From positions 1 through 13,583 of the IMG/VR virus record IMGVR_UViG_3300033892_000026: 13,583 bases of DNA; one strand, 5' to 3'. How positions within the stretch are numbered: the stretch's first letter is position 1; every line of letters begins with the position of its first letter. The position numbers and the translations under genes were made by a program. The notes below the pieces were generated by a model. It worked only from the letters and a program-made list of their open reading frames with translations, ran no database searches and was not told the DNA's origin. Of the stretch, positions 17 to 13,583 are shown piece by piece.

Positions 17-745
17 ATGGACAGGGATGAGCTTAAACAAATTATTCAAAACCTTCCAGATAACTCACCTAAACTTTTAGAGTATTTGAAAGAGGCAAGG
101 GAGAAGGGATGGGCTGACGTTGTTGACATGATTGCAATAAAGCTGGGGCTGAAGGAAGAGAAGAAAAAAGGAAAGAGAGAGGAGAGCGAGTTACTTAGGA
201 AGATTCTGAAACCCTTGGGCAAAAAGAAGATAGAACACACGTGGGATTACTCGGTGGATTTCACCGAAGCCAGGAAAGTACTTACATCTGCCTACAAACA
301 GCTGTATGATATGAATCTCATGCCCTACGAGGCGTACGTCGCTATCCTCCTCATACAACTAACAAACGGATCTAGAATCAAAGAAGCGATAAGGGCGTTT
401 AAGACGTTCGTAGAGTCAGGGCAAAGAGAGTTCCAGTTACAGGCTGAGAAGCACGGTAACACAAGGTTTTTCATCATCCATGACGTCATCAGGAACAGGC
501 TAGCGTATAAATCGATACTGACAATCTCGGACGACAAACTAGAAGCGAGGATAAGGATGTTCGCACTGAAGTACCTGAAATGTAACACACATTCGTTACG
601 TTACGCACTGATCTCCTTCCTTGCAAAAAATGCCACAGACCCTGCAATCATCGCGAAGATAACAGGTCACAAAAAATTGAACAGGATAATACAGTACACA
701 CAGACAAAGGACGCCATCGATATTTTGCGTAAGCTTTCTTCCTAG
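17..745 (+). CDS. int: Tyrosine recombinase / integrase (small, about 242 aa)
   Basis: The catalytic set is visible in order: R (NGSRIKEA), K (AEKHG), HxxR (THSLRY), H (ITGHK), Y (IQYT). GAGGAG at 3-8 favours ATG at 17 over GTG at 8. Size is similar to the ~240-aa integrases of ATV-like viruses (recalled). Confidence 0.92.
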   Translation: MDRDELKQIIQNLPDNSPKLLEYLKEAREKGWADVVDMIAIKLGLKEEKKKGKREESELLRKILKPLGKKKIEHTWDYSVDFTEARKVLTSAYKQLYDMNLMPYEAYVAILLIQLTNGSRIKEAIRAFKTFVESGQREFQLQAEKHGNTRFFIIHDVIRNRLAYKSILTISDDKLEARIRMFALKYLKCNTHSLRYALISFLAKNATDPAIIAKITGHKKLNRIIQYTQTKDAIDILRKLSS

Positions 746-799
746 CTATCCTGACTAATTTTTTAAGCAAATAATTCATATTATATAATAGGTGAAAAG

Positions 800-1009
800 A
801 TGGTGGAACTAAAGTTACGATGGAGAATTAAGACAACGAAGAAAAATGGTAAAGTATATCCTATATATTATATTTCAGTGCCAGGAAGGTCGGCTATTTT
901 TCTGTTGGATTATGAGCCATACCTAGACCCGGTAAACAAGGTAATCGTTTTTAAACCTAAACAAAACACCCAACAGAACAGTACCCAAAATCAACCCCAA
1001 AGTCAATAA
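800..1009 (+). CDS. Small basic protein, probable AbrB/SpoVT/MazE-like swapped-hairpin DNA-binding protein
   Basis: RBS AGGTGA at 790-795. The pattern K..NGK.Y.IYYISVP...KVIVFKP resembles archaeal AbrB-like proteins (YYITIP ... IVLKP). C-terminal tail is Q/N-rich. Confidence 0.6.
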   Translation: MVELKLRWRIKTTKKNGKVYPIYYISVPGRSAIFLLDYEPYLDPVNKVIVFKPKQNTQQNSTQNQPQSQ

Positions 1010-1024
1010 TTCTTTTCTTTTTTT
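1010..1024 (+). terminator. Oligo-T archaeal terminator
   Basis: TTCTTTTCTTTTTTT directly after the stop codon at 1009. Confidence 0.65.
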
Positions 1025-1037
1025 CCTTCTCTCTTTT

Positions 1038-1049
1038 TAACAGCTGTTT
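1038..1049. promoter_or_regulatory. Palindromic site (1-mismatch copy, TAACA-GC-TGTTT)
   Basis: Same position relative to terminator and promoter as the exact copy at 1348-1359. Confidence 0.7.
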
Positions 1050-1075
1050 TAAGATGCTCGGCTCGTAGTTCCCGT

Positions 1076-1105
1076 CTAACTTGTTGTGCAGAAATTTTAA
1101 ATACC
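1076..1105 (+). promoter_or_regulatory. Conserved 30-bp promoter block, copy 1 (CTAAC box, BRE, TATA)
   Basis: CTAACTTGTTGTGCAGAAATTTTAAATACC aligns without gaps to 1397-1426 and 1773-1802. TATA lies about 25 nt before ATG 1129 (leaderless geometry). Confidence 0.85.
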
Positions 1106-1128
1106 ACTCCTTCCAATAATTAAGTACA

Positions 1129-1314
1129 ATGAACCCAGACGAAGTGATGGTCAAAAAAATAATAGACATTTTAGAAAAAGATTTAAATCAGTTACAACAA
1201 ACCCTGCAACAAATATCAAAGAAAAATTTAGACAGAAACACGCTAGATGAAGCATATTTTTTGTCTCAAGAAATCCAAATGTATCTGTACAAGTTATTCA
1301 CTTTCGCAACCTAA
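1129..1314 (+). CDS. Hypothetical 61-aa helical protein (cassette gene 1)
   Basis: Has its own promoter and terminator; amphipathic helical pattern. Confidence 0.75.
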   Translation: MNPDEVMVKKIIDILEKDLNQLQQTLQQISKKNLDRNTLDEAYFLSQEIQMYLYKLFTFAT

Positions 1315-1331
1315 AAGTCAACCCGTTTTTT
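1315..1331 (+). terminator. Conserved terminator AAG(T/C)CAACCCG-Tn, copy 1
   Basis: AAGTCAACCCGTTTTTT directly after the stop; near-identical to 1681-1703. Confidence 0.75.
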
Positions 1332-1342
1332 ATTCACTTCTC

Positions 1343-1364
1343 CTCTCAAACAGCTGTTTTAGAG
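1343..1364. promoter_or_regulatory. Palindromic site CTCTCAAACA-GC-TGTTTTAGAG
   Basis: 10-bp arms with 1 mismatch; exact AAACA-NN-TGTTT core at 1348-1359. Confidence 0.8.
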
Positions 1365-1396
1365 TTTCATTGGATGCCAAGCCCGTTAGCTTCAGC

Positions 1397-1426
1397 CTAA
1401 CAAGTTGAGTAGAAAATTTAAATACC
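1397..1426 (+). promoter_or_regulatory. Conserved 30-bp promoter block, copy 2
   Basis: CTAACAAGTTGAGTAGAAAATTTAAATACC, followed by RBS GAGGAGG at 1447-1453. Confidence 0.85.
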
Positions 1427-1460
1427 AGTCTTAACATAATAGTAATGAGGAGGAATAAAA

Positions 1461-1676
1461 ATGATAGAGGTAGAAGTTAAGAAAAAAGAAGATATAGTAC
1501 AATTTGTAATTAATTCAAACGAAGAATTTATAAGAAGTGGTATAGTGGAAATTCCTAAAAAAGAATTTGACGAATGTATCAAGATTAAAGAAGAAGAACT
1601 AGGTTATGAATCCTCTTCTGCAGAAAGAGAAGCAATTTTCAATTATATCTTTTACAAAAAGTGTACCCTAACATAG
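1461..1676 (+). CDS. Hypothetical 71-aa Glu/Lys-rich protein (cassette gene 2)
   Basis: Strong RBS, own promoter and terminator; very AT-rich coding sequence. Confidence 0.8.
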   Translation: MIEVEVKKKEDIVQFVINSNEEFIRSGIVEIPKKEFDECIKIKEEELGYESSSAEREAIFNYIFYKKCTLT

Positions 1677-1680
1677 ACGC

Positions 1681-1703
1681 AAGCCAACCCGTTTTTTTTT
1701 TTT
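1681..1703 (+). terminator. Conserved terminator, copy 2
   Basis: AAGCCAACCCG followed by T12, starting 5 nt after the stop. Confidence 0.8.
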
Positions 1704-1772
1704 AATCCTTTCTTCTCTCAAGCAGTCGTTAAGACCTCCTTTCTTCCACACCATTCTCCCAACTCTTTTCCT

Positions 1773-1802
1773 CTAACCTTTTATGCAGAAAACTTAAATA
1801 TC
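1773..1802 (+). promoter_or_regulatory. Conserved 30-bp promoter block, copy 3
   Basis: CTAACCTTTTATGCAGAAAACTTAAATATC, preceded by a degenerate palindrome CTCTCAAGCA-GT-CGTTAAGA at 1715-1734. Confidence 0.8.
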
Positions 1803-1832
1803 TGAGTTAGTACACACATATAGTGAACAAAT

Positions 1833-2393
1833 ATGTCCTCTCCACAACCACAAGTTAAGTCAAATCCTAAGTCAGATCAAACTACTAATTCTACTCTAAC
1901 GTGGGAGGAGGTCTTACGGGCTACAAGAATAGATAAACAGCATATAGATTTTGCAATAGCACATATCGATACTGCACCAGTTATGCCGTATGAATTCATT
2001 TACAGCAAATATATCCCTTCGGATTTCAAAGTCTTCCATCCCGCTAGTGTTGCGGTTAGCGGGGCAGGAGGAGTGATAGGGTCTATTTTAGCTTTAAGAC
2101 ATGCCAGAGCAGTTAAGTACTTTGTAACAACCCAGGAAGTACTGAATTCCAACGACAAATCGCCATTGTTTCTAGCGAAGTATGCTTTAGAATTATTAGA
2201 GAAAAAATACAGAGATGTAGAAATAATTACAATAGACCTTGGTGAGTTCGAGAAAATAAAAATGCTGTTAAGTTATGGCGGGATATATATATCAGGGTTG
2301 CCTAATGAGATTATCGTTGAGATTGCCCAATTAGCGGGTTTTGGAAGATTATGGCATTTCTCGCCTATTCATCGAAAGTTCTACGTGTTCTAA
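1833..2393 (+). CDS. Hypothetical 186-aa alpha/beta protein (possible Rossmann/CARF-like fold)
   Basis: Long ORF under promoter copy 3. Disordered N-terminus followed by an alternating strand/helix pattern. The fold call is speculative. Confidence 0.8.
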   Translation: MSSPQPQVKSNPKSDQTTNSTLTWEEVLRATRIDKQHIDFAIAHIDTAPVMPYEFIYSKYIPSDFKVFHPASVAVSGAGGVIGSILALRHARAVKYFVTTQEVLNSNDKSPLFLAKYALELLEKKYRDVEIITIDLGEFEKIKMLLSYGGIYISGLPNEIIVEIAQLAGFGRLWHFSPIHRKFYVF

Positions 2394-2410
2394 ATTTCGA
2401 GGTGACAACA

Positions 2411-3163
2411 GTGAGCGAACAACAGTTTGAGAGCGAACAACAGTTTGAGCCAGAAATAAAAAAATTTAGGTGGTTGATTTCACAAGGTTATATAACTTCT
2501 ACGGAGTTAGCATTTTATTCTAACTTTTACAATATCGAGTTAACCACTATAGTCAGCTTCCAGGGACATGATGTATTAACTCCACTATTTATAGTAGCGA
2601 GACCAAGCAGATTTTATCAGATAAAGAGAGAATTAGCAGAAGCGGAAATAGCAGACCCGATTTCAAGAAAGTTCCCTGTTGTTTCCTTACTAAGTCTAGA
2701 AAAGTTTATCAATTCCCTAGTAAACATGAAAATACCCTACTTCTTCTTCTCATTATTTCTAGATAAATCTTATAATCTCCCACAAGAAGTTAACAGATTC
2801 TTATCAATTTTGATAGAGCTGGCAAACAGTTCAGGGAAGTACATCATAAAACCTTACAACATAAAAACAGAACCCCTACCGCTGAGCATAGAACCAGTGA
2901 AAGACGAGTTATATAAAGTAATTTGCCATTTCAGGAAGATGCTAGGGAATACAGTTGAGTGTAATGATGACGGGTGGTGGAAGTACAATCTTTGGGGCAA
3001 CAGAAATACTGCCAGTGTTGACAGAAAAATGATAGAGAAAATAGCACTACAATATAACATCTCGCCGATTTGCGTACAGTACGTTTTGGCATATAACAAA
3101 AACCCTTGCCACCTTTCATCGGATATCGTAAGTAAAATAAAATCCCATCTCTCTTCTTCTTAA
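2411..3163 (+). CDS. Hypothetical protein (about 250 aa)
   Basis: RBS GAGGTGA at 2399-2405 precedes an in-frame GTG at 2411, which removes the overlap implied by the 2351 start. T-run follows the stop. Confidence 0.8.
   Translation: MSEQQFESEQQFEPEIKKFRWLISQGYITSTELAFYSNFYNIELTTIVSFQGHDVLTPLFIVARPSRFYQIKRELAEAEIADPISRKFPVVSLLSLEKFINSLVNMKIPYFFFSLFLDKSYNLPQEVNRFLSILIELANSSGKYIIKPYNIKTEPLPLSIEPVKDELYKVICHFRKMLGNTVECNDDGWWKYNLWGNRNTASVDRKMIEKIALQYNISPICVQYVLAYNKNPCHLSSDIVSKIKSHLSSS
2414..2449 (+). repeat. Perfect 18-bp tandem duplication (encodes SEQQFE x2)
   Basis: AGCGAACAACAGTTTGAG at 2414-2431 and 2432-2449. Confidence 0.95.
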
Positions 3164-3175
3164 TTTTTTCTCTCC

Positions 3176-3697
3176 TTACGAAATGTTCGTATTCTGTTTT
3201 CTCTCCTTTTTCTTTATCTTTTTTGCATCTATCACTTCTATTACCCCTTCTTCTTCCAGATATTCTAGCACAACGTCACTATCATCTATCATTATGGCTT
3301 TATTCTGATCGTATTTTTCCATTAGCTCCTTTACGATAATTCTCTTAAATTCATGGTCTTTCCTGAAGTCCTTTTCGCCCCTCAGCACGACCTCGTTCGG
3401 CTCTATCCCTATCTCTGACAGTTGTTTGAGAGTTGCTTCGCGTTGTTTTTCCGAACGACCGCTGACTACTGCTATCACTTCTGGCTTTTCCTCCTCAATC
3501 AGCCGTTTGACAAACCTGATAACTTCCCACTTAGGTTCGTCCAGGTTCATGAACCTCGGTGATTGATAACATTCCCAAAACGCACGGTCGGGTTTCCAGG
3601 ATAATGTTTTCTTGTCTCCTCTGGATATCTTCTCGCATTCGTTCCACCTGGCAGAAGTATCGAAAAGCGTGCCGTCCATATCCAAGACCAGCATCAT
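3176..3697 (-). CDS. HAD-superfamily phosphatase, similar to the polynucleotide kinase 3'-phosphatase domain
   Basis: Motif I LDMDGT, motif II VVSGR, motif III RKDHEFK, motif IV IDDS. GGAGG RBS; ATGA overlap with the upstream gene. Confidence 0.88.
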   Translation of the reverse strand: MMLVLDMDGTLFDTSARWNECEKISRGDKKTLSWKPDRAFWECYQSPRFMNLDEPKWEVIRFVKRLIEEEKPEVIAVVSGRSEKQREATLKQLSEIGIEPNEVVLRGEKDFRKDHEFKRIIVKELMEKYDQNKAIMIDDSDVVLEYLEEEGVIEVIDAKKIKKKERKQNTNIS

Positions 3698-4275
3698 TTT
3701 CCTCCACTCCCTTGTGGTTCCTTAAAACCTAATATTGTTATTTTCCCGTTCTCTTCTTTGAACTCTAACTCCTTTCCCTTCCCCTCGACACTGTACACGA
3801 AGTAAAACGTTTTGAGACCTTTTTGGTCTCTTTCCCATGCTAATTTGCTACACTTCCCATCAAACCTAGTATTAAAGTAGTCTATCGCCTCCTGGTCGTT
3901 CTCTTCTTTTGCTATTTTTTCTAACGTTGCAGGGTCAAAAGGTTGATAGAATAAGTAGACCTTCTTATTGCCTTTTCCATCATCAAAAAAGAAGTATATT
4001 CCGTATTTGAACAGGTTAAGGTTTGATTGTACCATTATTTCACGGTGTTTCATGATATATTCGTTATCTGCAACGGCAGAAACATAAAGTGTATCGTGTC
4101 CGTCGCCTATGCCTATACATAGCAGGTTTGTATGTACGAACTTGTCGTTTTTGATCCTGTCTATTCTGACATAGAAAGAGACGTATGCTACGCCTATGGT
4201 CGGTGTATCTTGGGGCATAAAACCTTCGACACGCACTATGAAGTATTTGTCTATGTCGACTTTCGAGTTTACCAT
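3694..4275 (-). CDS. Hypothetical 193-aa beta-rich protein
   Basis: Minus-strand TATA (TTTTTAAAG, 4305-4297) lies about 22 nt upstream of the ATG; translationally coupled to the HAD gene. Confidence 0.8.
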   Translation of the reverse strand: MVNSKVDIDKYFIVRVEGFMPQDTPTIGVAYVSFYVRIDRIKNDKFVHTNLLCIGIGDGHDTLYVSAVADNEYIMKHREIMVQSNLNLFKYGIYFFFDDGKGNKKVYLFYQPFDPATLEKIAKEENDQEAIDYFNTRFDGKCSKLAWERDQKGLKTFYFVYSVEGKGKELEFKEENGKITILGFKEPQGSGGK

Positions 4276-4296
4276 GTTAGATTCTTCGCATGATAG

Positions 4297-4363
4297 CTTT
4301 AAAAAGTCGAATCACCTCTCAAACATCTGTTTAAGAGCAAATTCCTTCTGGCTGGTTTTTAAA
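4297..4363. promoter_or_regulatory. Divergent promoter with central palindrome CTCTCAAACA-TC-TGTTTAAGAG (4316-4337)
   Basis: Back-to-back TATA boxes (4297-4305 minus, 4356-4363 plus) flank a 22-bp palindrome with 1 mismatch. Confidence 0.8.
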
Positions 4364-4387
4364 CCTTTTCTGTGGAAAGTTAAAGAC

Positions 4388-4675
4388 ATGAAACCGGAGT
4401 GTAAAGTTCTGTTAAAAGCGTTTGAGATTCTTTCTACAGTCCAAAGCAAATACGATAATGATTTTCCTGAGATGTTATCGTACATATACCTTGTGGTGAA
4501 AGGGTACTGGAGAGTAAACGATAACGGAGAGACCGTGGAAGTGAAAAAACCACCGTTTTCGAGCATAGCCCTCCTTAACGCCATGAAGGAGATCACAAAA
4601 AGAGTCAGGAACGGTACCACAATTGAAGAAATCGTAAATGAAAAGGAACTCTGCGGTGATGTTGAGGAGATATGA
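4388..4675 (+). CDS. Hypothetical 95-aa protein
   Basis: Start moved from 4196 to ATG 4388, which is 25 nt after a TATA and avoids overlap with the divergent gene. ATGA coupling to the next gene. Confidence 0.75.
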   Translation: MKPECKVLLKAFEILSTVQSKYDNDFPEMLSYIYLVVKGYWRVNDNGETVEVKKPPFSSIALLNAMKEITKRVRNGTTIEEIVNEKELCGDVEEI

Positions 4676-5088
4676 CAGTAGCAAATTCAACTGTAATAAA
4701 TGCGTTACCTCCATTTTTTTACACTCAAGTCTTCCTTATTGACGTTGCAGGTGGGTTCGTTGTACTGACAATAATTGAGTTATTTCTGCTAAGAAACAGC
4801 AGTTTGACACACTTACGGCTCGCTCTGCCGTTCCTAACGTTTTCGATAGGCTTTACTCTTATTTCCCTATACCTTTCCCCTTACATAACGTATAACCCGG
4901 TATATACTACGCCGTACAACGTAACGTATAGAATTACGCCTTACAGTACCGACGGTGTCGTACTCCTATACATCAGTATCGCAGTCCTTGCCATGGCTAT
5001 AGCATACTTTGTTTATGCGTTTGCTGTTGACGTATTACACATTTCCTTTGGCGGTAGTAGTGATAATGACGGTTATTTCATACCTTAG
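4672..5088 (+). CDS. Membrane protein with about 3 transmembrane segments
   Basis: Three hydrophobic stretches; Tyr/Thr-rich loop containing an NVT sequon. Confidence 0.8.
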   Translation: MTVANSTVINALPPFFYTQVFLIDVAGGFVVLTIIELFLLRNSSLTHLRLALPFLTFSIGFTLISLYLSPYITYNPVYTTPYNVTYRITPYSTDGVVLLYISIAVLAMAIAYFVYAFAVDVLHISFGGSSDNDGYFIP

Positions 5089-5090
5089 GG

Positions 5091-5678
5091 GTGATACCAG
5101 TGTTACTGTTTAAGAAGAAGAAAAATACATCACCGGTCGTCTATAAGGATTATGACGCATTATTACTTTTGCCTCCAGCATTAGTCAAACTTGATAAAAA
5201 AACGCAGATAAGAGAAAACAACGGTGTACATGTGGCTATAATGTATTCTGAAACTAGCGGTATTTCCGTGATGATGGACTTACCCACGGATTTCTTGAAA
5301 TTATACTATAAGATGACCACACAGATAAACCAAGGAAACCCCAGTGACAGGATAGTCTATTTTGCAATGGTTTACATTTCTCCGCAACTGTATGCAGAAA
5401 AAAGAGCGAAAATACTGAAAATGGGTGCGAACGCTAAAAGGAAGTTTTTCGTCTACCCAAGGTGGATCTGGCTCATCTTAGAACGTTATAACGACACACT
5501 GAATTATTTCGTCATAAACAAATTTGAAGACGACGACCCTGGAAACTTCTCTAAGGAATTTGACACATTCGGTGCCGTTGGGCTTACCTACAATAATTAC
5601 TTCATTTTCGCCAGCGTTGCAAGGAAGGACTACATAGATTCAATAAATAAACGGAGATCCCTCGGTCTCTGGTGGTAA
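5091..5678 (+). CDS. Hypothetical 195-aa protein
   Basis: GTG start 2 nt after the previous stop; operon-like packing. Confidence 0.75.
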   Translation: MIPVLLFKKKKNTSPVVYKDYDALLLLPPALVKLDKKTQIRENNGVHVAIMYSETSGISVMMDLPTDFLKLYYKMTTQINQGNPSDRIVYFAMVYISPQLYAEKRAKILKMGANAKRKFFVYPRWIWLILERYNDTLNYFVINKFEDDDPGNFSKEFDTFGAVGLTYNNYFIFASVARKDYIDSINKRRSLGLWW

Positions 5679-5680
5679 TA

Positions 5681-6202
5681 ATGTCCCTCTCGCATTTACA
5701 ATCGCTCGTAGGGAAAAACGTGATATTATTCAACTACCTACGTAATGTATTCAAGAATAAGATATACAAAATAGCTGAAAATGAAAACGAATATATCCTC
5801 CATGTCGATATGGGAATACCCAGCAGGTTACAGCACAGGATTACTTACCCTGGGATTTACTTTGTCACAGACGTCATGATACAAGGTACTAACTATGCGA
5901 TTTATCTGAAAAAACAGGTCGACCTAAAGAAGTTTGCATTGGTAAGCTCCATAGCAACGTCTGAGTATTACATTTCATCATACCGTAAAATACAATACAA
6001 GACTGATAAAGGGTTCGTGTTCGACTCCTTAGAATTCGATATAGGTGGGTTTCACCACCTTGTGTTTAACTACAACAAATGTATTATAGCGAAAGTGAAA
6101 AAGTCAGGTCAGAGACGCATCGCCGTATGTCTAGGTGATAGTGTAGTTATAGATGATATAAACAATGTTACATGCAATGATGAGTGGTTTAGTGTAGAGT
6201 GA
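5681..6202 (+). CDS. Hypothetical beta-rich protein (about 173 aa)
   Basis: RBS GGTGG at 5671-5675 favours ATG 5681 over GTG 5672. Confidence 0.75.
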   Translation: MSLSHLQSLVGKNVILFNYLRNVFKNKIYKIAENENEYILHVDMGIPSRLQHRITYPGIYFVTDVMIQGTNYAIYLKKQVDLKKFALVSSIATSEYYISSYRKIQYKTDKGFVFDSLEFDIGGFHHLVFNYNKCIIAKVKKSGQRRIAVCLGDSVVIDDINNVTCNDEWFSVE

Positions 6203-6213
6203 GGTGGTAGACA

Positions 6214-6870
6214 ATGGCATATACTAAAAAACAAAACGAAGTCCCTACTCCTGAACAGTTCCAATTCATTGTCTATAAAGAGGTGTGTATGGGGGACAAA
6301 AGCCTTGTACATCCTACCATAGCCATAGAGAGGTTAAACACTATAATGCTTACCTATTACAGCGACGAGATAGAGGAACTGTGGAGGGAATTAGTTCTCA
6401 AAAGATATGAGAACGCCACGTCTGAGGACGAACTAAGGCAGATTCTGCAAATTGGCTGTGACCTCATGTTTATCGTAATGAACGCGTCTGGCGAAGATGT
6501 CAAGTCGTTAGTAACGAAAATACTGAACAACACAAGGAAAAAACATCTGTTTTATGTCAACGAGGAAGGACTAGTTGCTGAAAGTTCGTATCTCATAGAC
6601 GTGCTGACAAGGTTTGTGAACCCCAACGGGTTCGATGTGTTGACTGTTTTAAGCATACTAAAGGACGTGCAAATTAGGACGGCTACTATGATTAGCAGTA
6701 TTAAGGGGACGTCACTGTATCAGTCGCTTATAAGTGAACTAGGCATTGATGAAAATACTATTGAGAAAAAATGCACGGCGAAGTACTATAGGGAATGCGT
6801 AACTGAGAAGAAAACGCAGTTGCTGAAAGCGTTACAGTTTATCAGGATGAACATAAATATTCCGCGTTAG
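6214..6870 (+). CDS. Hypothetical 218-aa all-alpha protein (weak MazG-like pattern)
   Basis: RBS GAGGTGG at 6201-6207; helical composition. Confidence 0.8.
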   Translation: MAYTKKQNEVPTPEQFQFIVYKEVCMGDKSLVHPTIAIERLNTIMLTYYSDEIEELWRELVLKRYENATSEDELRQILQIGCDLMFIVMNASGEDVKSLVTKILNNTRKKHLFYVNEEGLVAESSYLIDVLTRFVNPNGFDVLTVLSILKDVQIRTATMISSIKGTSLYQSLISELGIDENTIEKKCTAKYYRECVTEKKTQLLKALQFIRMNINIPR

Positions 6871-6909
6871 AACTAACCTAAAAAAGAATTTATAAAAAAT
6901 GGGGGTTAA

Positions 6910-6952
6910 GGGGACGGAAAGCCTCGCCCTTCCAAGGCGGGGAGGAGGTCAG
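6910..6952 (+). mobile_element. 43-bp IS200/IS605-family remnant (single hairpin; probable left-end/right-end fusion scar)
   Basis: GC-rich island in AT-rich DNA: GGGGACGGAAAG-CCTCGCC-CTTCCAA-GGCGGGG-AGGAGGTCAG. It follows TTAA (6906-6909) and ends in TCAG, resembling the subterminal hairpins of Sulfolobales IS605-type elements (recalled). Clean removal restores a TAA stop and adjacent terminator for the neighbouring gene. Confidence 0.75.
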
Positions 6953-7236
6953 TATGTATTTACATTTACATTTAGTTTTTTGAGCAGTTCATCCATGAGG
7001 CGTTTATCCTTTTTTAAAATGTCTGCGATATCATCAATATAGTCCTCGACAATCTCTTCTAGGATATCGTCAATGTGTTCTCTGACAATCTCTTCTAAAT
7101 CGTTACGGTCGAACTCGACATCATCAACATCAACATCAACATAACCTTTGTAGTCGTCGCATATGATTCCTTCGTATGTATCATTATAACAAATGTCCTC
7201 TAAGTCTTTGTATCTTATAAACACCGGGACTTTCAC
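6949..7236 (-). CDS. Highly acidic 95-aa protein (29 D/E) with an internal 12-aa duplication
   Basis: GTG start with a GGGGCG RBS-like element; minus-strand TATA TTTATATA (7282-7275); T-run terminator on the minus strand at 6899-6894. Confidence 0.85.
   Translation of the reverse strand: MKVPVFIRYKDLEDICYNDTYEGIICDDYKGYVDVDVDDVEFDRNDLEEIVREHIDDILEEIVEDYIDDIADILKKDKRLMDELLKKLNVNVNTY
7027..7098. repeat. Imperfect 36-bp tandem duplication (LEEIVREHIDDI / LEEIVEDYIDDI)
   Basis: GATATCATCAATATAGTCCTCGACAATCTCTTCTAG versus GATATCGTCAATGTGTTCTCTGACAATCTCTTCTAA. Confidence 0.85.
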
Positions 7237-7273
7237 TTAAGTCGCCCCAACATTAATAGTATTAATAAAACCA

Positions 7274-7301
7274 GTATATAAACCTCAAACAGCTGTTTTT
7301 T
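7274..7301 (-). promoter_or_regulatory. Promoter of the acidic ORF with a palindrome over the BRE region
   Basis: TATA at 7282-7275; CTCAAACA-GC-TGTTT at 7284-7298 directly upstream of it. Confidence 0.75.
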
Positions 7302-7325
7302 AAAGCGGAATACGGATTTCACTCC

Positions 7326-7991
7326 TTAACTTCCATTTAAAACTACGGTAAATATCGTGGTGTTTTGTGCATATATAACTAGAGTATTATCGCATATGTA
7401 CGATTTTACTTCTCCGCCATTATGAATCACTGTTATGCTTCCGTTTATCGGGTAGTATAATGTCTGTTCTATCAGTGCTGTCCCGTTTACCGTGATTTTT
7501 CCTTTTTGCACTGTTATATGCCCGTTATACAGTATCTGCCAACCGTATTCCGATATCCCATACGACGAGTTGTATATTACAGTAAAATTAGGATTTATCA
7601 CGGGGTATACCGTACCTGCAGGGGCGAACCCGCTTATAGCTAATACGGCAGTTTGAGTGCCGTAAAGGTAGAACGTAATTATATAGGCAGATTGTTGTGA
7701 AATAGCAATAGTAGGGTCTGGTGCTGTAACGTTTACTATGGCACGGTCGTGAGGTTTTAGGATTATGACGGTCGGGTACCAACGGTGACTGTTAATTACC
7801 GGCACCAATACATATGTTTTATTGGTAGGGTTTTGTATGCATACCGTTAACACGTTGTACTTATTTATTTCCCCTACATCGTAAAAACCCACTACCTTTG
7901 CGTGCAAAAGCGGGTGATAGAAAAAGATAGAGAACGTGAAGAGGGATGGTATTATGACTCCTAACGTTAGTACGGTTTCAAGCTTTTGCAT
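7326..7991 (-). CDS. Membrane-anchored extracellular beta-rich glycoprotein
   Basis: N-terminal hydrophobic anchor; 8 N-X-S/T sequons (NKT, NVT, NFT, NSS, NGT, NGS, NTT, NGS); GGTGG RBS; overlaps the upstream gene by 14 nt. Confidence 0.82.
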   Translation of the reverse strand: MQKLETVLTLGVIIPSLFTFSIFFYHPLLHAKVVGFYDVGEINKYNVLTVCIQNPTNKTYVLVPVINSHRWYPTVIILKPHDRAIVNVTAPDPTIAISQQSAYIITFYLYGTQTAVLAISGFAPAGTVYPVINPNFTVIYNSSYGISEYGWQILYNGHITVQKGKITVNGTALIEQTLYYPINGSITVIHNGGEVKSYICDNTLVIYAQNTTIFTVVLNGS

Positions 7992-9033
7992 CTTCTACCA
8001 CCATCCACTTGACGTATTGCAACGCAAAATAAAACGTAAAATACGCTAAATCTCTATAAGAGAATATCCATATTAACGCCGGAAGACCCCAAGCTAATTC
8101 TTTCTTATTATTATATAATAGGATTAATGTGAAAAGAGACACTTCAAGTACGGTATACACGAACGAGGGGATAGGCAAGCCGAAGGCTGTAAGGAGCGAA
8201 AACGAAACGCCCTGCTGTGCAACAGGTTGTGTAATAGTTATAACGGACGCAAGGTACTGCTTTGAAATGAAGGGTATTGATGAAAGCAGTAGTGGTAACG
8301 CGAATTCTGCTATCTTCCTAAGTTTCTGTCTTTCAAATTTAATTAGAAGAATAGCTATCAGTATCGCAAACTGCTTTACGTCTGCAGAGATTCCCAGTAA
8401 CAAGTATCTGAACCTCTCGTTTAGTAGGGCAAGAAACGCCAGGGAGTAAGCGACGAGGTTCAACTCCTGTCCTGTCGCAAAATCATACGAAAGTGCGGGA
8501 AATAGGAAAAAAGACCCAATGAAAACGTTTTCGCGTCTTTTGATGAAGGAATATGTAAAAGCTAAAACAGCTGATATTACGTCTACTGTTTCGAGGTTGT
8601 GAAAAACTGCGACACTGATAAATGATAACGGTGGGTAAATATAGACTGACGGCATAAATGAGCTTGACGTAGTGCCAGTCACAACGTTGTACGGGACGTG
8701 GTATATGGAAAACGCTTTAGCCATGGAGTAAAGGTACGGGTTTTTTCCTTCTAGGAATAGCTGTGACGCGTATAATATTATTGCTTCTTCATCCGTCAGG
8801 ATAGGTAACCCCGTCACTATATTCGCTACAGCTGTAACGGTTGCGATAACAAAAGCAGAAACAACGAGTATCCTTTGCCTCACGAATATAGAGAGCATAC
8901 CTAAGGCGACGACGAGGAACGCGGGAGGTAGTAAATACGGTTTTCCGTCACCTAAGAACGCTGTCCCTATACTGGTTAGACCTAGTCCTGCAAAAAACCA
9001 CGATAAATTTTCTTTCAGTTCCATAACAGGCAC
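7978..9033 (-). CDS. Polytopic membrane protein, probable GT-C fold glycosyltransferase (GT87/DUF2029-like)
   Basis: Many transmembrane segments. The first large loop carries TDEE...LFLEGKNPY...YIYPP, and a later KQ motif is present, as typical of GT87-like enzymes. Confidence 0.72.
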   Translation of the reverse strand: MPVMELKENLSWFFAGLGLTSIGTAFLGDGKPYLLPPAFLVVALGMLSIFVRQRILVVSAFVIATVTAVANIVTGLPILTDEEAIILYASQLFLEGKNPYLYSMAKAFSIYHVPYNVVTGTTSSSFMPSVYIYPPLSFISVAVFHNLETVDVISAVLAFTYSFIKRRENVFIGSFFLFPALSYDFATGQELNLVAYSLAFLALLNERFRYLLLGISADVKQFAILIAILLIKFERQKLRKIAEFALPLLLSSIPFISKQYLASVITITQPVAQQGVSFSLLTAFGLPIPSFVYTVLEVSLFTLILLYNNKKELAWGLPALIWIFSYRDLAYFTFYFALQYVKWMVVEDAKA

Positions 9034-9036
9034 CAG

Positions 9037-9696
9037 CTACAGCCTGTCTGTACTTATTGGAGTAATACCCAACGTTTGTGCTATTTCTAGTGGTGACAAC
9101 ATCTCTACTCTCATTTTCGACGTAGTTACTCCTCCGACTTCCATTATACTCCTTTCGAACGCTAACAACAGTAAGACTACTAGCTTGTGTGCCTGGTTAA
9201 GCTTAGCCATTATTTCATCGTAGTTCGCGTCGCTCGCTATCAAACTCTGAAGCTCCGAAAACTTTTCGGTCAATTCATCGGTTGCAAGGCTTGTAAATCT
9301 GTCGGTTAAAATCGATAATAAGATTTGGAAGGTCTCATCTACGTTATATGGGGTACCGTAAAACTGTAGAGATCCACTCTTGAGGTCTTTTGTTAGAATT
9401 AGGACGTAATTGTTTAGGATTTCCTGGATAGTCGTTATTTGGACTGCTTCCTTCTGTGTTACTTGCCTAGTCGGTATGATAGCTTTTTCCCTAATTGCTT
9501 GTCTGACTAAGTTTGGGTCTACTTTTACAATGTTCCTCTTCCCTAATGGCGATAACTGAGGTTGCTGTTGGGTTTGTTGTAATTGTGTGAATAGTGGCGT
9601 TGGTGGTGGAGGGGACGCAGTGCCTCCTACTTCATAGACGGGTTCCTGTTGCTGTTGTTGTTGCTGTTTTTTATTATTTGGATTATTTAGACTCAT
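9037..9696 (-). CDS. Hypothetical 219-aa protein with a poly-Q/poly-P N-terminus and helical C-terminal domain
   Basis: Minus-strand TATA (TTTAAAAA, 9726-9719) about 22 nt upstream; first gene of a 3-gene operon. Confidence 0.85.
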   Translation of the reverse strand: MSLNNPNNKKQQQQQQQEPVYEVGGTASPPPPTPLFTQLQQTQQQPQLSPLGKRNIVKVDPNLVRQAIREKAIIPTRQVTQKEAVQITTIQEILNNYVLILTKDLKSGSLQFYGTPYNVDETFQILLSILTDRFTSLATDELTEKFSELQSLIASDANYDEIMAKLNQAHKLVVLLLLAFERSIMEVGGVTTSKMRVEMLSPLEIAQTLGITPISTDRL

Positions 9697-9718
9697 GTTA
9701 TTTTCTTGTCCCAGAAGG

Positions 9719-9769
9719 TTTTTAAAGCGATTCCAAGACTCAAACAGATGTTTGAGGAAAATTTATAAG
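9719..9769. promoter_or_regulatory. Divergent promoter with perfect palindrome CTCAAACA-GA-TGTTTGAG (9739-9756)
   Basis: Minus-strand TATA at 9719-9726; plus-strand BRE GAAAA at 9757-9761 and TATA TTTATAAG at 9762-9769; perfect 8-bp arms between them. Confidence 0.85.
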
Positions 9770-9790
9770 TTTCTGACGCCAGATGTTCTT

Positions 9791-11542
9791 ATGCAATTGC
9801 AAGAACAACAAGGACAAAACACCGAAAATCTGTCTCCTTCTACCGACGTCTCCACTATTGCACAACGCTTGAAAGACGAGTTAGATAAATACGTTGTCGG
9901 AAATGAAGACGTCAAAACAGCTGTTATAACAGGGCTATTGACTGGGTTTCCTACTTTGCTCATCGGAGACCCAGGTACTGCGAAAACGTATACTATTGAG
10001 ATTTTATCGAAGATGATTGACGGCATTAAACCAGAAGAGCTTTTCATAGTGTTAGCTCATGAGGCAATGACACCAGAGGACATTTTTGGAAATGTAAACC
10101 TGAAAAAACTGAGAGAAGAAGGAGTACTGGAATATATTACCGAAGGCTTCCTACCTTCTGCTAAGTTAGTTTTCATAGACGAGATATTCAAGAGCAACAA
10201 AGTCCTTGCCGAATCGCTGTTCAGAGCGATCAACGAAAAGAAGTTCAAGAACGGGAGTAAAGAGGTCTCTTTACCTTGGTTGGCGTTCTTTTCCGCGTCA
10301 AACGAAGTGAGGGTAAACACACAAGCGGACAGAGCATTTCTAGACAGGTTCAAGATATTCGCTACAGTTCTTTCGCCTAACCTTGAAGATATACAAGACC
10401 TCAAGTCGATCGCAGAAAGGTATTATAAAGTCCTCACAGCGACTAAGCCTACTTCCATCCCGATTGTAACGAGTTACGACGAAGTCAAAAAAATACAGGA
10501 CAAAATCCTTTCAGATTACACTAAATATGTGACAGAGGATATTACACTCGAAGCGATAAAGCAGGCTAACCTTATCTTGGGTGAGATAGGACGTGCTTTG
10601 CAAAACCCGAGGACGTTTGGAGATTCCGGAATTGTAAGGATGTACTTCAAATCCATGGGTGGATATCTGACGATCAGCGAGAGAAAGTTCAAAAGCATAA
10701 TGCAAGTGGCTAACGCACTACGTGAAATGTTCGGCAACTCAACAATTACACCAGTGCATACCGCGTTAGCGTTCTACCTTACAATCCCGTTCACTCCAGA
10801 GTTAAAGAACATAATTACTCCTATAATCTCGACAATGATCAAAACATATTTCGGTGCTGAAGAAGGATCGAACAGGACTTCTATTGATATTAAGGGCTTG
10901 TTAGACAACTTTTTTGAAATTACAAATGATATTTTTGTAGACAAAAATCTGAATAAGATAATAGACGAAACGACCGCTTATGCTGTAAATGTTATTACTA
11001 ACTCATTCCCTGGATCGTCATCCGATTTAGCAAAAGACAAAGCAGACCTTATTTCGAAATTTTCCGATGTAACAACTAGTAAAGACACAGTGGATAAATT
11101 GAATAAATTCATAAAAGCTGTAGGTGCCTTAAGCGATATTGAAACTAAGTACGCTAATAATATTAGAGTAAGGACTTTAGCACGTAAACTCCTTCAAAGT
11201 ATTATGTCTAGTGTCTCTACCAAGATAGATGTAAATCGTTTAAAGACCGATGCATTAGATCAGCTTCAGAAGGCTTATGCCAGGATAAAAGCAGAAATTG
11301 AAAGCAAATTTAACGAACTAACGAAACAAGGAGGTAATGATGAGAACAAAAAACTTATCGAAGGGATACGAAAATTCTTCCCGCAATTTTCTAACGTATT
11401 ACCACAAGAAGCAGTGTTACAAGACCAAAAACAGCAGATAATGGTGAACCTTGCCATTGCTTTTAATGAGGCGGAGAAAAAAATAGTAGATTTCATGGAC
11501 ACATTAGAAAAGACTATAAAGATGCTTTCCCAGATGAAGTGA
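9791..11542 (+). CDS. MoxR/RavA-type AAA+ ATPase (ATV p618-like), about 583 aa
   Basis: Walker A GDPGTAKT, Walker B VFIDEIFK, sensor I ASNE, arginine finger AFLDRF, and ISERK; long helical C-terminus. Start moved to ATG 9791 on promoter geometry. Confidence 0.93.
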   Translation: MQLQEQQGQNTENLSPSTDVSTIAQRLKDELDKYVVGNEDVKTAVITGLLTGFPTLLIGDPGTAKTYTIEILSKMIDGIKPEELFIVLAHEAMTPEDIFGNVNLKKLREEGVLEYITEGFLPSAKLVFIDEIFKSNKVLAESLFRAINEKKFKNGSKEVSLPWLAFFSASNEVRVNTQADRAFLDRFKIFATVLSPNLEDIQDLKSIAERYYKVLTATKPTSIPIVTSYDEVKKIQDKILSDYTKYVTEDITLEAIKQANLILGEIGRALQNPRTFGDSGIVRMYFKSMGGYLTISERKFKSIMQVANALREMFGNSTITPVHTALAFYLTIPFTPELKNIITPIISTMIKTYFGAEEGSNRTSIDIKGLLDNFFEITNDIFVDKNLNKIIDETTAYAVNVITNSFPGSSSDLAKDKADLISKFSDVTTSKDTVDKLNKFIKAVGALSDIETKYANNIRVRTLARKLLQSIMSSVSTKIDVNRLKTDALDQLQKAYARIKAEIESKFNELTKQGGNDENKKLIEGIRKFFPQFSNVLPQEAVLQDQKQQIMVNLAIAFNEAEKKIVDFMDTLEKTIKMLSQMK

Positions 11543-11546
11543 GAGT

Positions 11547-13583
11547 ATGCAAAACTTCTTTAATAATAATGAAGACGACGAGGAGAAACAACTAATACAA
11601 CTAACAGACACTGTCTTTAAAACAGTATCCAAATTACTTAGGATTGGAGCTGACATTAGTGACAGTGTATGGAATACTGTACATAAACTTGTTAAGATAG
11701 CATCAGAACAAAATAAACTTCTATTACAATTCCCAGCAATCCTCGCTTATTTCGTTTATAATTTTCTAAAAAACATCGACCTAGATAGAATTGACGACAT
11801 AAACGAAAAACTGGACGATATCCAACGTCTGATAAAGCGTAAGAACCTTCAGGGTTTATCATTCAACACCATCAAACAGATGTTACAACAGGAGTTGCAG
11901 GAGAGAAAATTCAGACGTAACAGACCTAACAAAACAGAAAAACAACAAGAAGGACAGAAGCAAGGCGAAAAAGAAGGAGAAAAACAGGAAGAGGGAGAAG
12001 AAGGGCAAGAAAGTGGAGAAGAAGGACAAAACATGAATCAAGAGGGTGAAGGAGAAGGACAGGAATCAGAAGGTGAAGGAGAGGGAGAAGAAGAATTAGG
12101 AGAAGAAGGAGAGGGAGGGGAAAGTGAAAATGAAGGGAGCCAGGAACAACAGAGACAGGAATTAGAAAAAGAAAGTCAGGAGAGTAACGGGCAAGAAAAC
12201 GGTGAGGAACAAGAAGGTGAAGAAAGCAATGAAGGGGAACAACAAGGTGGAGAAGGAGAATCACAGGAAGGTGTAGAAGAAGGAGAAGCTGAGGGGAGCC
12301 AGAGCGGAGAAGAGGGAGAGGAGGCAGAATCACAGGGTGAAGAAGGACAAAGCGAGGAAGAAGGAAACGAAGGAGAACAAGGTAATGCCCAGGAAGGACA
12401 AGAATTAGGAGAGGAAGAAGGGGAACAAAGCGAAAACGAAGGACAAAATGGCGAGGAGCAGGGAGGTCAGAACAGTGGAGAAGGACAAGAGGGTAATGAG
12501 GAAGAAAGTGAAGGAAGCCCGAGCGGGGAACAGGAATCAGAAGGAGAATCGCAAGAAGGCGAACAAGGAGGTGGTGAAGAGGGTGAAGGTGGAGAGGAAG
12601 GTGGAGAGCAGGAAGGTGGTGAAGGAGAAGGAAGCGAAAGTGAAAGTACCCAAGGTCAAAATGGTGAACAAGGTGGAGAGGGTTCAGAAGGTGGAGAAGG
12701 GCAAGAAGTTGAAGATATTTTCGAAGACCTCGAAGACAACATTAACGAGGAATCAATGATCTTAGATCAGTTGGAAGAAAGCCTGCAAAAATCACTGACA
12801 GCATTATCAGTTGGGAAAGGCTCGGGAGGAGGAATACTAAACGAAGTCAATCCTAGAATTTTAGAACTGTTAGAGAATGCTAACAGGATTCTGGCTCTGG
12901 CTAACCAGGTCGATTTAGAGTACGCTAACAGAGGCGTTAAGGATCAAGGAGGTGTAATGAAGGGGATAACGACTGGAAATAATATTAAACACATGTTTAA
13001 GAGTCAACTGCTCCTACCAGATGAGATTTTCCTAGAACGCTACACGAACAGAGCTTTACTACAAAGGGCAGTGGAAAACGAGGGAGTCGGAGACTTCTAT
13101 TTCCTTATAGACAAAAGCGGATCGATGAGAAGTACAATGCCGAACGGGTATACGGCATTTGAAAACGTTTCTGCCGTAGCCTTAGCTTCTGCTATGGAAG
13201 CTGAAAAGAATAATAAGAAGGTATTTGTACAGTACTTCGATACTTCATCAACTGAGCCTTTGGACGTTAACAACGTTTTCGAGATAGCTCAGACCGAACC
13301 TGGAGGAGGAACTGACATGATGGACGCACTAAAACACTTCATGGATTATTATAATAACTATCCAGGGTTAAAGGACGTTAGACAGATCTTCATAATGTCT
13401 GACTTTGAGACGAATTATGATAGATTTACTCTTGAGGAGTTTAAGAACTTTGCAAGAAATAATAACCTAGTAGTGACATGTCTGCATGTATATGGTGATG
13501 ATAAAGTGCCTGATGAAATGCAATACATAATAGACGAAATCTGTGACGAATATTACAAATTTAATAACTATGACGCCAGCGAA
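11547..13583 (+). CDS. VWA (MIDAS) domain protein with a long acidic linker, MoxR partner (ATV p892-like); truncated by the window end
   Basis: ATG 4 nt after the ATPase stop (MQNFFNNNEDDEEKQ...); 679 codons to the window end. The same frame gives YFLIDKSGSM (DxSxS at 13110-13124), PGGGTD and IFIMSDF. Absent from the ORF track, consistent with having no stop in the window. Confidence 0.92.
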   Translation, partial: MQNFFNNNEDDEEKQLIQLTDTVFKTVSKLLRIGADISDSVWNTVHKLVKIASEQNKLLLQFPAILAYFVYNFLKNIDLDRIDDINEKLDDIQRLIKRKNLQGLSFNTIKQMLQQELQERKFRRNRPNKTEKQQEGQKQGEKEGEKQEEGEEGQESGEEGQNMNQEGEGEGQESEGEGEGEEELGEEGEGGESENEGSQEQQRQELEKESQESNGQENGEEQEGEESNEGEQQGGEGESQEGVEEGEAEGSQSGEEGEEAESQGEEGQSEEEGNEGEQGNAQEGQELGEEEGEQSENEGQNGEEQGGQNSGEGQEGNEEESEGSPSGEQESEGESQEGEQGGGEEGEGGEEGGEQEGGEGEGSESESTQGQNGEQGGEGSEGGEGQEVEDIFEDLEDNINEESMILDQLEESLQKSLTALSVGKGSGGGILNEVNPRILELLENANRILALANQVDLEYANRGVKDQGGVMKGITTGNNIKHMFKSQLLLPDEIFLERYTNRALLQRAVENEGVGDFYFLIDKSGSMRSTMPNGYTAFENVSAVALASAMEAEKNNKKVFVQYFDTSSTEPLDVNNVFEIAQTEPGGGTDMMDALKHFMDYYNNYPGLKDVRQIFIMSDFETNYDRFTLEEFKNFARNNNLVVTCLHVYGDDKVPDEMQYIIDEICDEYYKFNNYDASE
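11935..12750 (+). repeat. Low-complexity purine-rich tract encoding an E/G/Q/S-rich linker of about 270 aa
   Basis: Reiterated GAA/GGA/GAG/CAA codons (EGEGEG, QESEGE, EELGEEEG motifs). Confidence 0.9.

Follow-up and report, generated by a model that had tools for sequence, protein, structure and literature searches.

A dispersed promoter palindrome in Sulfolobus monocaudaviruses as the putative operator of a single dimeric regulator

A short palindrome with the core AAACA-N2-TGTTT (AAACANNTGTTT) recurs throughout the metagenomic viral contig IMGVR_UViG_3300033892_000026 and in the genomes of its closest relatives, where it is real and strongly selected. The whole contig of 13,583 bases was analyzed (hereafter, the window). 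It shares 78–83% identity across at least two thirds of its length with Sulfolobus monocaudaviruses (SMVs) SMV3, SMV4, and SMV1, large tailed spindle viruses of hot-spring archaea that are filed under Bicaudaviridae. We propose, at a probability of roughly 70%, that the palindrome serves as operator for a single sequence-specific regulator with two-fold symmetry, presumably a dimer, which would act on initiation at most promoters of the SMV1/3/4 type. We favor this reading because the motif combines dyad symmetry, fixed spacing, conserved arms around a tolerant center, positions locked to promoters, and restriction to a single lineage; from the same sequence data we infer protein binding, the dimeric state, the transcription starts, and any sign of regulation. 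So read, the motif belongs to a well-known type of cis-regulatory element but has an unusual reach, about 30 copies over most promoters of each genome, and it appears to be previously undescribed. Our literature searches found no published description of it, although the original SMV genome papers possibly lay outside their reach, and this agrees with a preliminary description of the window, made from its sequence without database searches, whose author knew of no description of it for these viruses.

Abundance, form, and distribution of the palindrome

The window holds six exact cores where 0.03 are expected, and 12 cores with at most one mismatch where 1.29 are expected; none of 200 shuffles reached either count. 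Recounting placed all twelve (six exact and six with one mismatch, Table 1) where the preliminary description had put them, and its chance estimates of about 0.04 exact and about 1 one-mismatch copies agree with the shuffles, while the AT content that it had judged by eye at ~62% is 60.3% when computed. In an unbiased scan of all 5-Nx-5 palindromes the motif ranks first in the window, and a repeat search recovered the same family independently. Its copies have just 16–26 nt in common and are therefore not pieces of longer repeats, as the copies of a mobile element (like a miniature inverted-repeat transposable element, MITE) or of a duplicated segment would be; the exception is a set of three cassettes at about 1010–1830.

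The motif extends beyond this core. Its symmetric half-site consensus is c-T-c-A-A-A-C-A-K, with a left CTC flank that mirrors the right GAG, and the full palindrome spans 12–18 bp (cTcAAACAK-MTGTTTgAg), so that the extension previously noted in the best copies is real. In 95% of half-sites, G or T occupies the first central position. Since the half-site ends in G or T, the centers are GC, TA, or GA/TC: the earlier reading of the center as mostly GC or GA/TC was right about these dinucleotides, but TA centers also occur and the two central bases are not free. Under a weight matrix trained on other genomes, the four highest-scoring window sites are all intergenic (23–27 bits), and intragenic copies reach 16–18.5 bits. 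The noncoding 6.5% of the window contains 4/6 exact copies (P = 2.4e-4). Two weaker copies that had been proposed at 1715–1734 and 3412–3432 are present in degenerate form, with three mismatches (1720–1731) and two mismatches (3416–3427), respectively; their SMV3 orthologues match the motif better.

The same palindrome is the most enriched one in the complete genomes of SMV1, SMV3, and SMV4 (unbiased scan), which carry 28, 31, and 30 exact copies, respectively, against about 0.15 expected in each. All 12 metagenomic SMV-like contigs that we found through the ATPase gene carry it, at 2.3–5.5 copies per 10 kb, and its density over SMV-like contigs from IMG/VR and metagenomes is about 3–7 copies per 10 kb. 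A search of 2.9 million IMG/VR contigs for the 18-mer CTCAAACAKMTGTTTGAG returned only SMV-like stretches, plus four isolated unrelated matches. Of 120 metagenome stretches containing the 18-mer, 63 come from SMV-like sequence, with 165 cores over 294 kb; the others are essentially devoid of further cores beyond the match itself. In 185,579 reference genomes the 18-mer has 88 matches, near a rough chance estimate of about 70, and none of the 80 matches listed is in Sulfolobales.

Outside the SMV1/3/4 group the motif fades. SMV2 has only 3 exact copies, and its orthologous promoter sites carry 1–3 mismatches. ATV has no exact copy; a shorter variant, (G/A)AACAGCTGTT(C/T), is weakly enriched there (6 vs. 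0.31 expected), and the same 10-mer core occurs in SMV2 (5 vs. 0.26 expected). The whole genome of ATSV contains 2 exact copies, and the first 50 kb of STSV2 contain none. Enrichment in relatives, which the preliminary description had suggested looking for in SMV, ATV, and STSV genomes, is thus strong in SMV1, SMV3, and SMV4 and only slight in SMV2 and ATV, while the first 50 kb of STSV2 show none. The motif is lineage-specific, confined to one clade of viruses.

Selection on the motif and its placement at promoters

Substitutions avoid the arms of the palindrome. When SMV1 copies are compared with the aligned bases of SMV3 and SMV4, 1/240 positions differ in intergenic arms (0.4%), 4/48 in the two central bases (8%), and 16.5% in the flanks, the order expected of an operator whose contact positions are conserved above its spacer and surroundings. 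Spacing is equally strict: AACA-N2-TGTT occurs 37–43 times per genome, compared with 0–3 times for spacers of zero, one, or three bases (N0, N1, and N3), so that dyad symmetry goes together with a fixed distance between half-sites.

Copies inside genes are a minority, and some of them are under selection. In SMV1, SMV3, and SMV4, 23/89 exact copies are intragenic, and their numbers exceed those in codon-preserving shuffles (12 vs. 1.7, 5 vs. 0.85, and 6 vs. 0.92, respectively; each 0/500 shuffles); for the window alone the comparison is not significant (1 vs. 0.16). Third-codon positions within the arms of intragenic copies changed in 1/42 cases, compared with 26% in flanks. A codon-preserving shuffle and a test of conservation at synonymous positions were among the checks that the preliminary description had put forward. 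Among intragenic SMV1 copies, 7/9 are translated as K-(Q/H)-(L/M)-F, and the frame that would require cysteine is avoided. Individual window copies differ in this respect (Table 1): those at 6541, 12987, and 11874 are conserved, that at 9915 is intermediate, that at 7808 is only partly conserved, and the match at 4794, counted among the one-mismatch cores before, is most likely due to chance.

Most copies mark promoters. Coding sequences make up 86–88% of the SMV1, SMV3, and SMV4 genomes, and 66/89 exact copies (74%) lie outside annotated coding sequences. Distances from the motif to the start codon are bimodal and fall into three classes, of 34, 23, and 4 cases, each with its own placement relative to the core promoter. 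Class I copies lie at most 24 nt from the start codon and cluster at 9–16 nt; an A/T-rich TATA-like box either ends 6–10 nt before the motif or extends into the left arm, and the usual TATA-to-start distance in Sulfolobus would put the motif at about −15 to −3. The genes concerned belong mainly to the structural module (major capsid, head proteins, and large virion proteins). In class II, at 25–80 nt, the motif touches or lies near the TATA box and the TFB-recognition element (BRE), and it is often common to two divergent promoters. Class III copies, about 100–111 nt from the start codon, are found in repeated cassettes, in which a T-tract terminator is followed by a CT-rich stretch and then by the motif; a strong promoter of the GCAGAAAATTTAAATA type lies about 55 nt further on.

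The window contains classes II and III and intragenic copies only. Its three tandem cassettes, at 1010–1830, each run from a AACCCGTTTTTT terminator through the CT-rich stretch, the palindrome, and ~55 nt to the GCAGAAAATTTAAATA-type promoter and a small gene. Their counterparts in SMV3, gp46–48, are listed together with gp69 and gp71 among predicted early anti-defense genes in a study of archaeal virus promoters, and these genes match the window cassette promoters (PMC11065993). The promoter contexts given in the preliminary description hold throughout: between divergent TATA boxes at 4321 and 9742, beside the TATA box of the acidic open reading frame (ORF) at 7287, and upstream of all three cassette promoters.

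A separate observation concerns SMV1 gp11 ("major head protein"; stretch L003, 16772–17233), whose annotated start is probably ~115 nt too far upstream. The gp11 orthologue in SMV3 and SMV4 starts 10 nt after a conserved motif copy, and the SMV1 copy is at 16864.

Table 1. Copies of the palindrome and genes in the window. Gene products were assigned by homology; genes are numbered in their order along the window. "Third-codon changes" refers to the arms of a copy, with the value for its flanks after "vs."
Feature	Position	Core start	Match and score	Context	Conservation
Strongest copy, CTCAAACAGATGTTTGAG	9739–9756	9742	exact; 26.9 bits	between divergent promoters of 219-aa gene (−) and MoxR-type ATPase (+); TATA-like boxes at about 9717–9728 and 9758–9769, right box begins 4 nt past core	arms invariant in 14 relatives; center GA/GG/CC/GC
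Copy in cassette 2	1345–1362	1348	exact; 26.7 bits	after T-tract terminator of D63-like gene; ~50 nt upstream of GTAGAAAATTTAAATA promoter (1409–1424) of 71-aa gene	
Intergenic copy	4318–4335	4321	exact; 24.8 bits	between divergent promoters of 193-aa gene (−) and 95-aa gene heading + operon; TATA-like boxes at about 4297–4309 and 4354–4365	arms identical in 7 relatives; center TC/TA; indel beside site
Intergenic copy	7284–7301	7287	exact; 23.1 bits	adjoins TATA/BRE (7274–7286, − strand reading GAGGTTTATATAC) of acidic 95-aa ORF (6949–7236, −)	arms identical in 6 relatives
Copy in cassette 1, TAACAGCTGTTT	1035–1052	1038	one mismatch; 17.7 bits	~40 nt upstream of GCAGAAATTTTAAATA promoter (1088–1103) of D63-like 61-aa gene	identical sequence in SMV3
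Decayed copy in cassette 3, AAGCAGTCGTTA	1720–1731	1720	three mismatches; 2.2 bits	position equivalent to other cassettes; upstream of GCAGAAAACTTAAATA promoter (1786–1801) of 186-aa virion protein gene	orthologous SMV3 site (38727) exact
Intragenic copy	6541–6552	6541	exact; 18.5 bits	218-aa gene	identical in 8 relatives; third-codon changes 0/24 vs. 37%
Intragenic copy	12987–12998	12987	exact; 17.0 bits	VWA-domain gene; frame K-H-M-F	third-codon changes 1/36 vs. 36%
Intragenic copy	296–307	296	one mismatch; 16.6 bits	integrase gene	orthologous site exact in SMV1, SMV3, SMV4
Intragenic copy	9915–9926	9915	one mismatch; 16.1 bits	ATPase gene	partly conserved, mismatched end differs among relatives; third-codon changes 10/52 vs. 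35%
Intragenic copy	11874–11885	11874	one mismatch; 15.8 bits	start of VWA gene	conserved in all relatives; third-codon changes 1/33 vs. 28%
Weak copy, TGACAGTTGTTT with GAGAG flank	3416–3427	3416	two mismatches; 12.7 bits	polynucleotide-kinase-phosphatase gene	SMV3 orthologue has one mismatch
Doubtful match	7808–7819	7808	one mismatch; 12.6 bits	221-aa gene	kept in most relatives, not in SMV3 or SMV4
Match probably due to chance	4794–4805	4794	one mismatch	138-aa gene	not conserved in relatives; third-codon changes 7/24 vs. 34%
Gene 1				SSV-type integrase	
Gene 2	800–1009			69-aa gene	
Genes 3	in cassettes at about 1010–1830			three small cassette genes: D-63-like 61-aa, 71-aa, 186-aa virion protein	
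Gene 4				second virion protein	
Gene 5				polynucleotide-kinase-phosphatase-like HAD protein	
Genes 6	4388–4675 (first gene); 6949–7236 (acidic ORF)			five-gene operon (+) headed by 95-aa gene, then acidic 95-aa ORF (−)	
Genes 7				three-gene block (−), including membrane protein	
Gene 8				MoxR-type AAA ATPase (+)	
Gene 9	11547 to contig end (open frame)			VWA-domain gene, start only; frame open to contig end	

Three other features of these genes deserve mention. The VWA-domain gene includes a long GAA/GGA-rich, low-complexity coding repeat at 11928–12716 (a Glu/Gly/Gln-rich acidic tract), and the acidic 95-aa ORF contains a tandem duplication of 36 nt (75% identical) at 7022–7093. In SMV1 the MITE SMN2 (stretch L003, 33927–34177) takes the place of the acidic ORF pair of the window and SMV3/4, and the motif copy beside it, at 34246, is retained.

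A putative operator, its binder, and rival explanations

If the palindrome is an operator, one regulator would link about 30 transcription units in each genome within a common circuit of control. Each subunit would read the half-site cTcAAACA(G/T), with AAACA arms 2 bp apart and the centers of the extended half-sites about 10 bp apart. The three position classes suggest three geometries with different outcomes at different promoters. In the first, mostly in the virion or structural module, the operator would occupy positions of roughly −15 to −3 relative to the inferred start, or lie over the TATA box, and a dimer bound there would be a competitor of RNA polymerase, TFB, or TBP. In the second, the operator adjoins BRE/TATA, often of two divergent promoters, and its occupation may block or recruit TFB/TBP. 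In the third, where the operator precedes the strong promoters of the cassettes by ~55 nt and comes after the T-tract of the upstream gene, it could serve as an upstream site or a roadblock. Conserved intragenic copies may be auxiliary sites, acting as roadblocks or in cooperative binding.

Expression data complicate any single sign of regulation. In the published SMV1a expression data, the structural region and gp05, gp06, and gp09 are early, and gp03, gp11, gp23, and gp24 are full-time or late (PMC12199143). Motif promoters occur in both sets, and the motif therefore does not simply label a particular temporal class; nor do the SMV1a classes reported there for motif-bearing genes fit a plain repressor of late genes (PMC12199143). 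One possibility, which we offer tentatively and consider rather unlikely, is that a single virus-encoded factor reads the ~30 operators and that position alone decides the effect, shutting promoters of the TATA-to-start class and opening or insulating those with copies at the BRE or far upstream, with intragenic copies as roadblocks to elongation. This would be a whole-genome switch in an archaeal virus. More remotely still, a dense array of bound sites might also aid the known escape of SMV1 from CRISPR spacer acquisition.

The binder is most likely encoded by the virus, since no Sulfolobales appear among the listed reference-genome matches to the 18-mer and the motif is restricted to one clade. 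The sole recognized clade-restricted DNA-binding family that we found is a ribbon-helix-helix (RHH) family typified by SMV1 gp50 (Pfam RHH_1, 1e-8; phrog_876 "transcriptional repressor", 9e-29), which is confined to SMV and hot-spring contigs and encoded outside the window; to name it as the binder is a guess. Autoregulation of gp50 was dismissed, as a copy upstream of the homologue is kept only in SMV4. By phyletic pattern, none of the SMV1 proteins combines presence in SMV1/3/4 with absence from every motif-poor relative; gp50 and gp51 fail as motif-specific candidates since SMV2 has both.

Other candidates were rejected. The gp43/ATV ORF98a family, common to SMVs and ATV, always adjoins a motif copy, but its homologues are common in Sulfolobales chromosomes and in conjugative plasmids without the motif, and we reject it on these grounds; plasmid pKEF9, which carries a gp43 homologue, shows no enrichment, with a single exact copy and, when one mismatch is allowed, 5 copies against 2.1 expected. 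This family of ~97 aa is found at 5630–6043 in stretch L054 (SMV1), 970–1263 in L047, 7900–8196 in L052, and 7554–7850 in L009 (ATV). In SMV1/3/4 and ATV a motif copy is always at or just past the 3′ end of the gene, and the SMV1 gp43 annotation (137 aa) looks overextended. Our guess from its sequence that the 69-aa protein of the window has an AbrB-like fold found no support: the protein has no Pfam or PDB sequence match, and its model has no fold match. Its family is confined to SMV-like contigs; SMV2 gp40 (stretch L008, 36939–37349) is a tandem duplication of it, and two-domain forms of 122–142 aa also occur in metagenomes. The 95-aa product of the first gene after the 4321 operator was considered as well and discarded for want of a fold match.

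Several points weigh against the operator reading. No binder was identified among the window proteins, where the AlphaFold models of the 69-aa protein (pLDDT 75) and of the 95-aa protein at 4388–4675 (poor, pLDDT 66) gave no fold match. The gp50 gene has no consistently placed upstream copy, and SMV2 keeps homologues of gp50 and gp51 though its own copies have decayed by 1–3 mismatches. RHH dimers usually read the center of a palindrome, the least conserved part here. TATA boxes were assigned from the sequence, and transcription starts from these TATA-like boxes alone. Finally, gp03 and gp11 carry class I copies yet are highly expressed throughout in the SMV1a data (PMC12199143), which tells against the reading in its simple-repressor form.

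Among the alternatives the strongest, which we nonetheless hold to be unlikely, is that the same kind of site is read by a host transcription factor exploited by the virus, as a recruiting element that fires promoters at genome entry. SIRV1 promoters, which use the host protein Sta1, provide a parallel. In the SMV1a study, class I genes are already highly expressed at 0.5 h post infection, when little viral protein can have been made (PMC12199143); because class I promoters are active so early, a host factor stays in play. The motif also has its AACA/TGTT half-site in common with the ARA-box of the host, AACATGTT, to which XylR binds (PMC7264815), and we identified no viral binder. Conversely, Sulfolobales are missing from the listed reference-genome matches to the 18-mer, and the viral genomes show no excess of the N0 spacing that the ARA-box has (0–2 per genome vs. 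37–43 for N2). Furthermore, the motif belongs to one clade, decayed in SMV2, with 2 exact copies in ATSV and none in the first 50 kb of STSV2, although the hosts of these viruses are related.

The preliminary description had offered, as the alternative to a dimeric regulator, a parS-like mark for genome organization, partition, or packaging, read by a structural or segregation protein. The dimeric regulator fits all of the computed data, and the parS or packaging role finds no support in them. About 30 dispersed copies per genome, some of them intragenic and under synonymous-site selection, would suit such a mark, and ATV encodes a ParB-like protein. However, ATV, the sole relative with an annotated ParB-like gene (the SMVs were not searched for ParB), has only the weak variant of the motif, and the strongest copies are all at promoters. 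Rather than forming clustered, promoter-independent sites, the copies are dispersed, with 74% in the ~13% of the genome that is noncoding, at fixed offsets from TATA boxes and start codons. This dispersal and the tie to promoters make a parS or packaging role very unlikely.

Just as improbable is the absence of any dedicated protein, with the palindrome a by-product of core promoter, leader, or ribosome-binding needs, a terminator hairpin, or a recombination joint between modules. Consistent with such origins, the right arm of class I copies with its GAG flank sits where an AT-rich proximal element and a GGTGA-like ribosome-binding sequence are expected, the cassette motif comes after a T-tract terminator, and copies border gene modules. 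Yet the same perfect palindrome lies upstream of, downstream of, and over TATA boxes as well as within genes, its left CTC flank mirrors the right GAG, and copies fall outside longer repeats, the three cassettes excepted. A hairpin or RNA function was likewise set aside: the predicted hairpins have little stability (−0.3 to −5.1 kcal/mol at 37 °C, with a host living near 75–80 °C), there is no Rfam match, and a scan of window positions 900–1900 for terminators found none. We judge a by-product unlikely on account of the palindrome's occurrence on either side of TATA boxes and in genes, the mirrored flank, the weak hairpins, and the lack of an RNA family.

Significance and relation to known regulatory systems

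Almost nothing is known of gene control in large spindle-shaped archaeal viruses. The sole temporal transcriptome of SMV1 calls its pattern complicated and names no cis-element (PMC12199143). A sharply defined operator could be used as bait for its regulator and to sort ~30 transcription units into mechanistic classes. It could also help correct gene starts (e.g., that of SMV1 gp11) and spot SMV-type contigs in metagenomes, and it may provide a switchable promoter part for Sulfolobus genetics.

Among known elements of the same host group, the ARA-box of the Sulfolobales sugar regulon, activated through XylR, acts as a protein-dependent promoter element (PMC7264815). Both are palindromes with AACA/TGTT half-sites upstream of promoters. 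Unlike the ARA-box, which has no spacer, the SMV motif has a strict 2-bp spacer, longer arms, and a virus-wide distribution, and identity of the two is excluded by the rarity of the N0 form. An early "anti-defense gene" promoter consensus of archaeal viruses including SMV2–4 comprises a strong BRE/TATA core with its surroundings, no more than 100 bp from the start codon (PMC11065993). It resembles the SMV motif in being a shared regulatory sequence upstream of viral genes that emerged from a motif search, whereas the palindrome lies ~55 nt upstream of the cassette TATA box and is also found at structural-gene and divergent promoters; the text of that study does not mention it (PMC11065993). 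The aCcr1-box, a 9-bp element A(T/G)G(A)TA(G)A(T/G)TACN, targets host cell-division genes, and ATV and SMV3 encode aCcr1 homologues (PMC9976878). The SMV motif differs from it in sequence and is not an aCcr1-box. As a side observation, another palindrome, TAGTA-N1-TACTA, has four copies each in ATV and ATSV (0.12–0.17 expected). It is similar to the aCcr1-box as published, and both viruses have homologues of the RHH protein that binds that box.

Regulators of archaeal viruses that bind repeated sites in several viral promoters include the SSV1 repressor F55 and SIRV1 SvtR. In both systems the binding protein is known, and the sites, a handful per genome, differ in architecture (tandem repeats for F55) from the ~30 palindromic copies of the SMV motif. 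Functionally, the nearest analogues are phage repressor operator networks, namely the operators of P1 C1 and the "stoperators" of mycobacteriophage L5 and other cluster A phages. As in these systems, one short site occurs in tens of copies, mostly intergenic and near promoters with some inside genes (28–31 exact copies per SMV1/3/4 genome), and would place many units under one regulator. The sites of these phage networks are asymmetric, and stoperators, which block elongation, are oriented with transcription, whereas the SMV motif is a perfect palindrome and therefore carries no orientation. It would also act in an archaeal host with TBP, TFB, and RNA polymerase II-like machinery. The motif offers a compact natural system in which to learn how the placement of an operator with respect to TATA/BRE leads to repression or activation on an archaeal, eukaryote-like apparatus.

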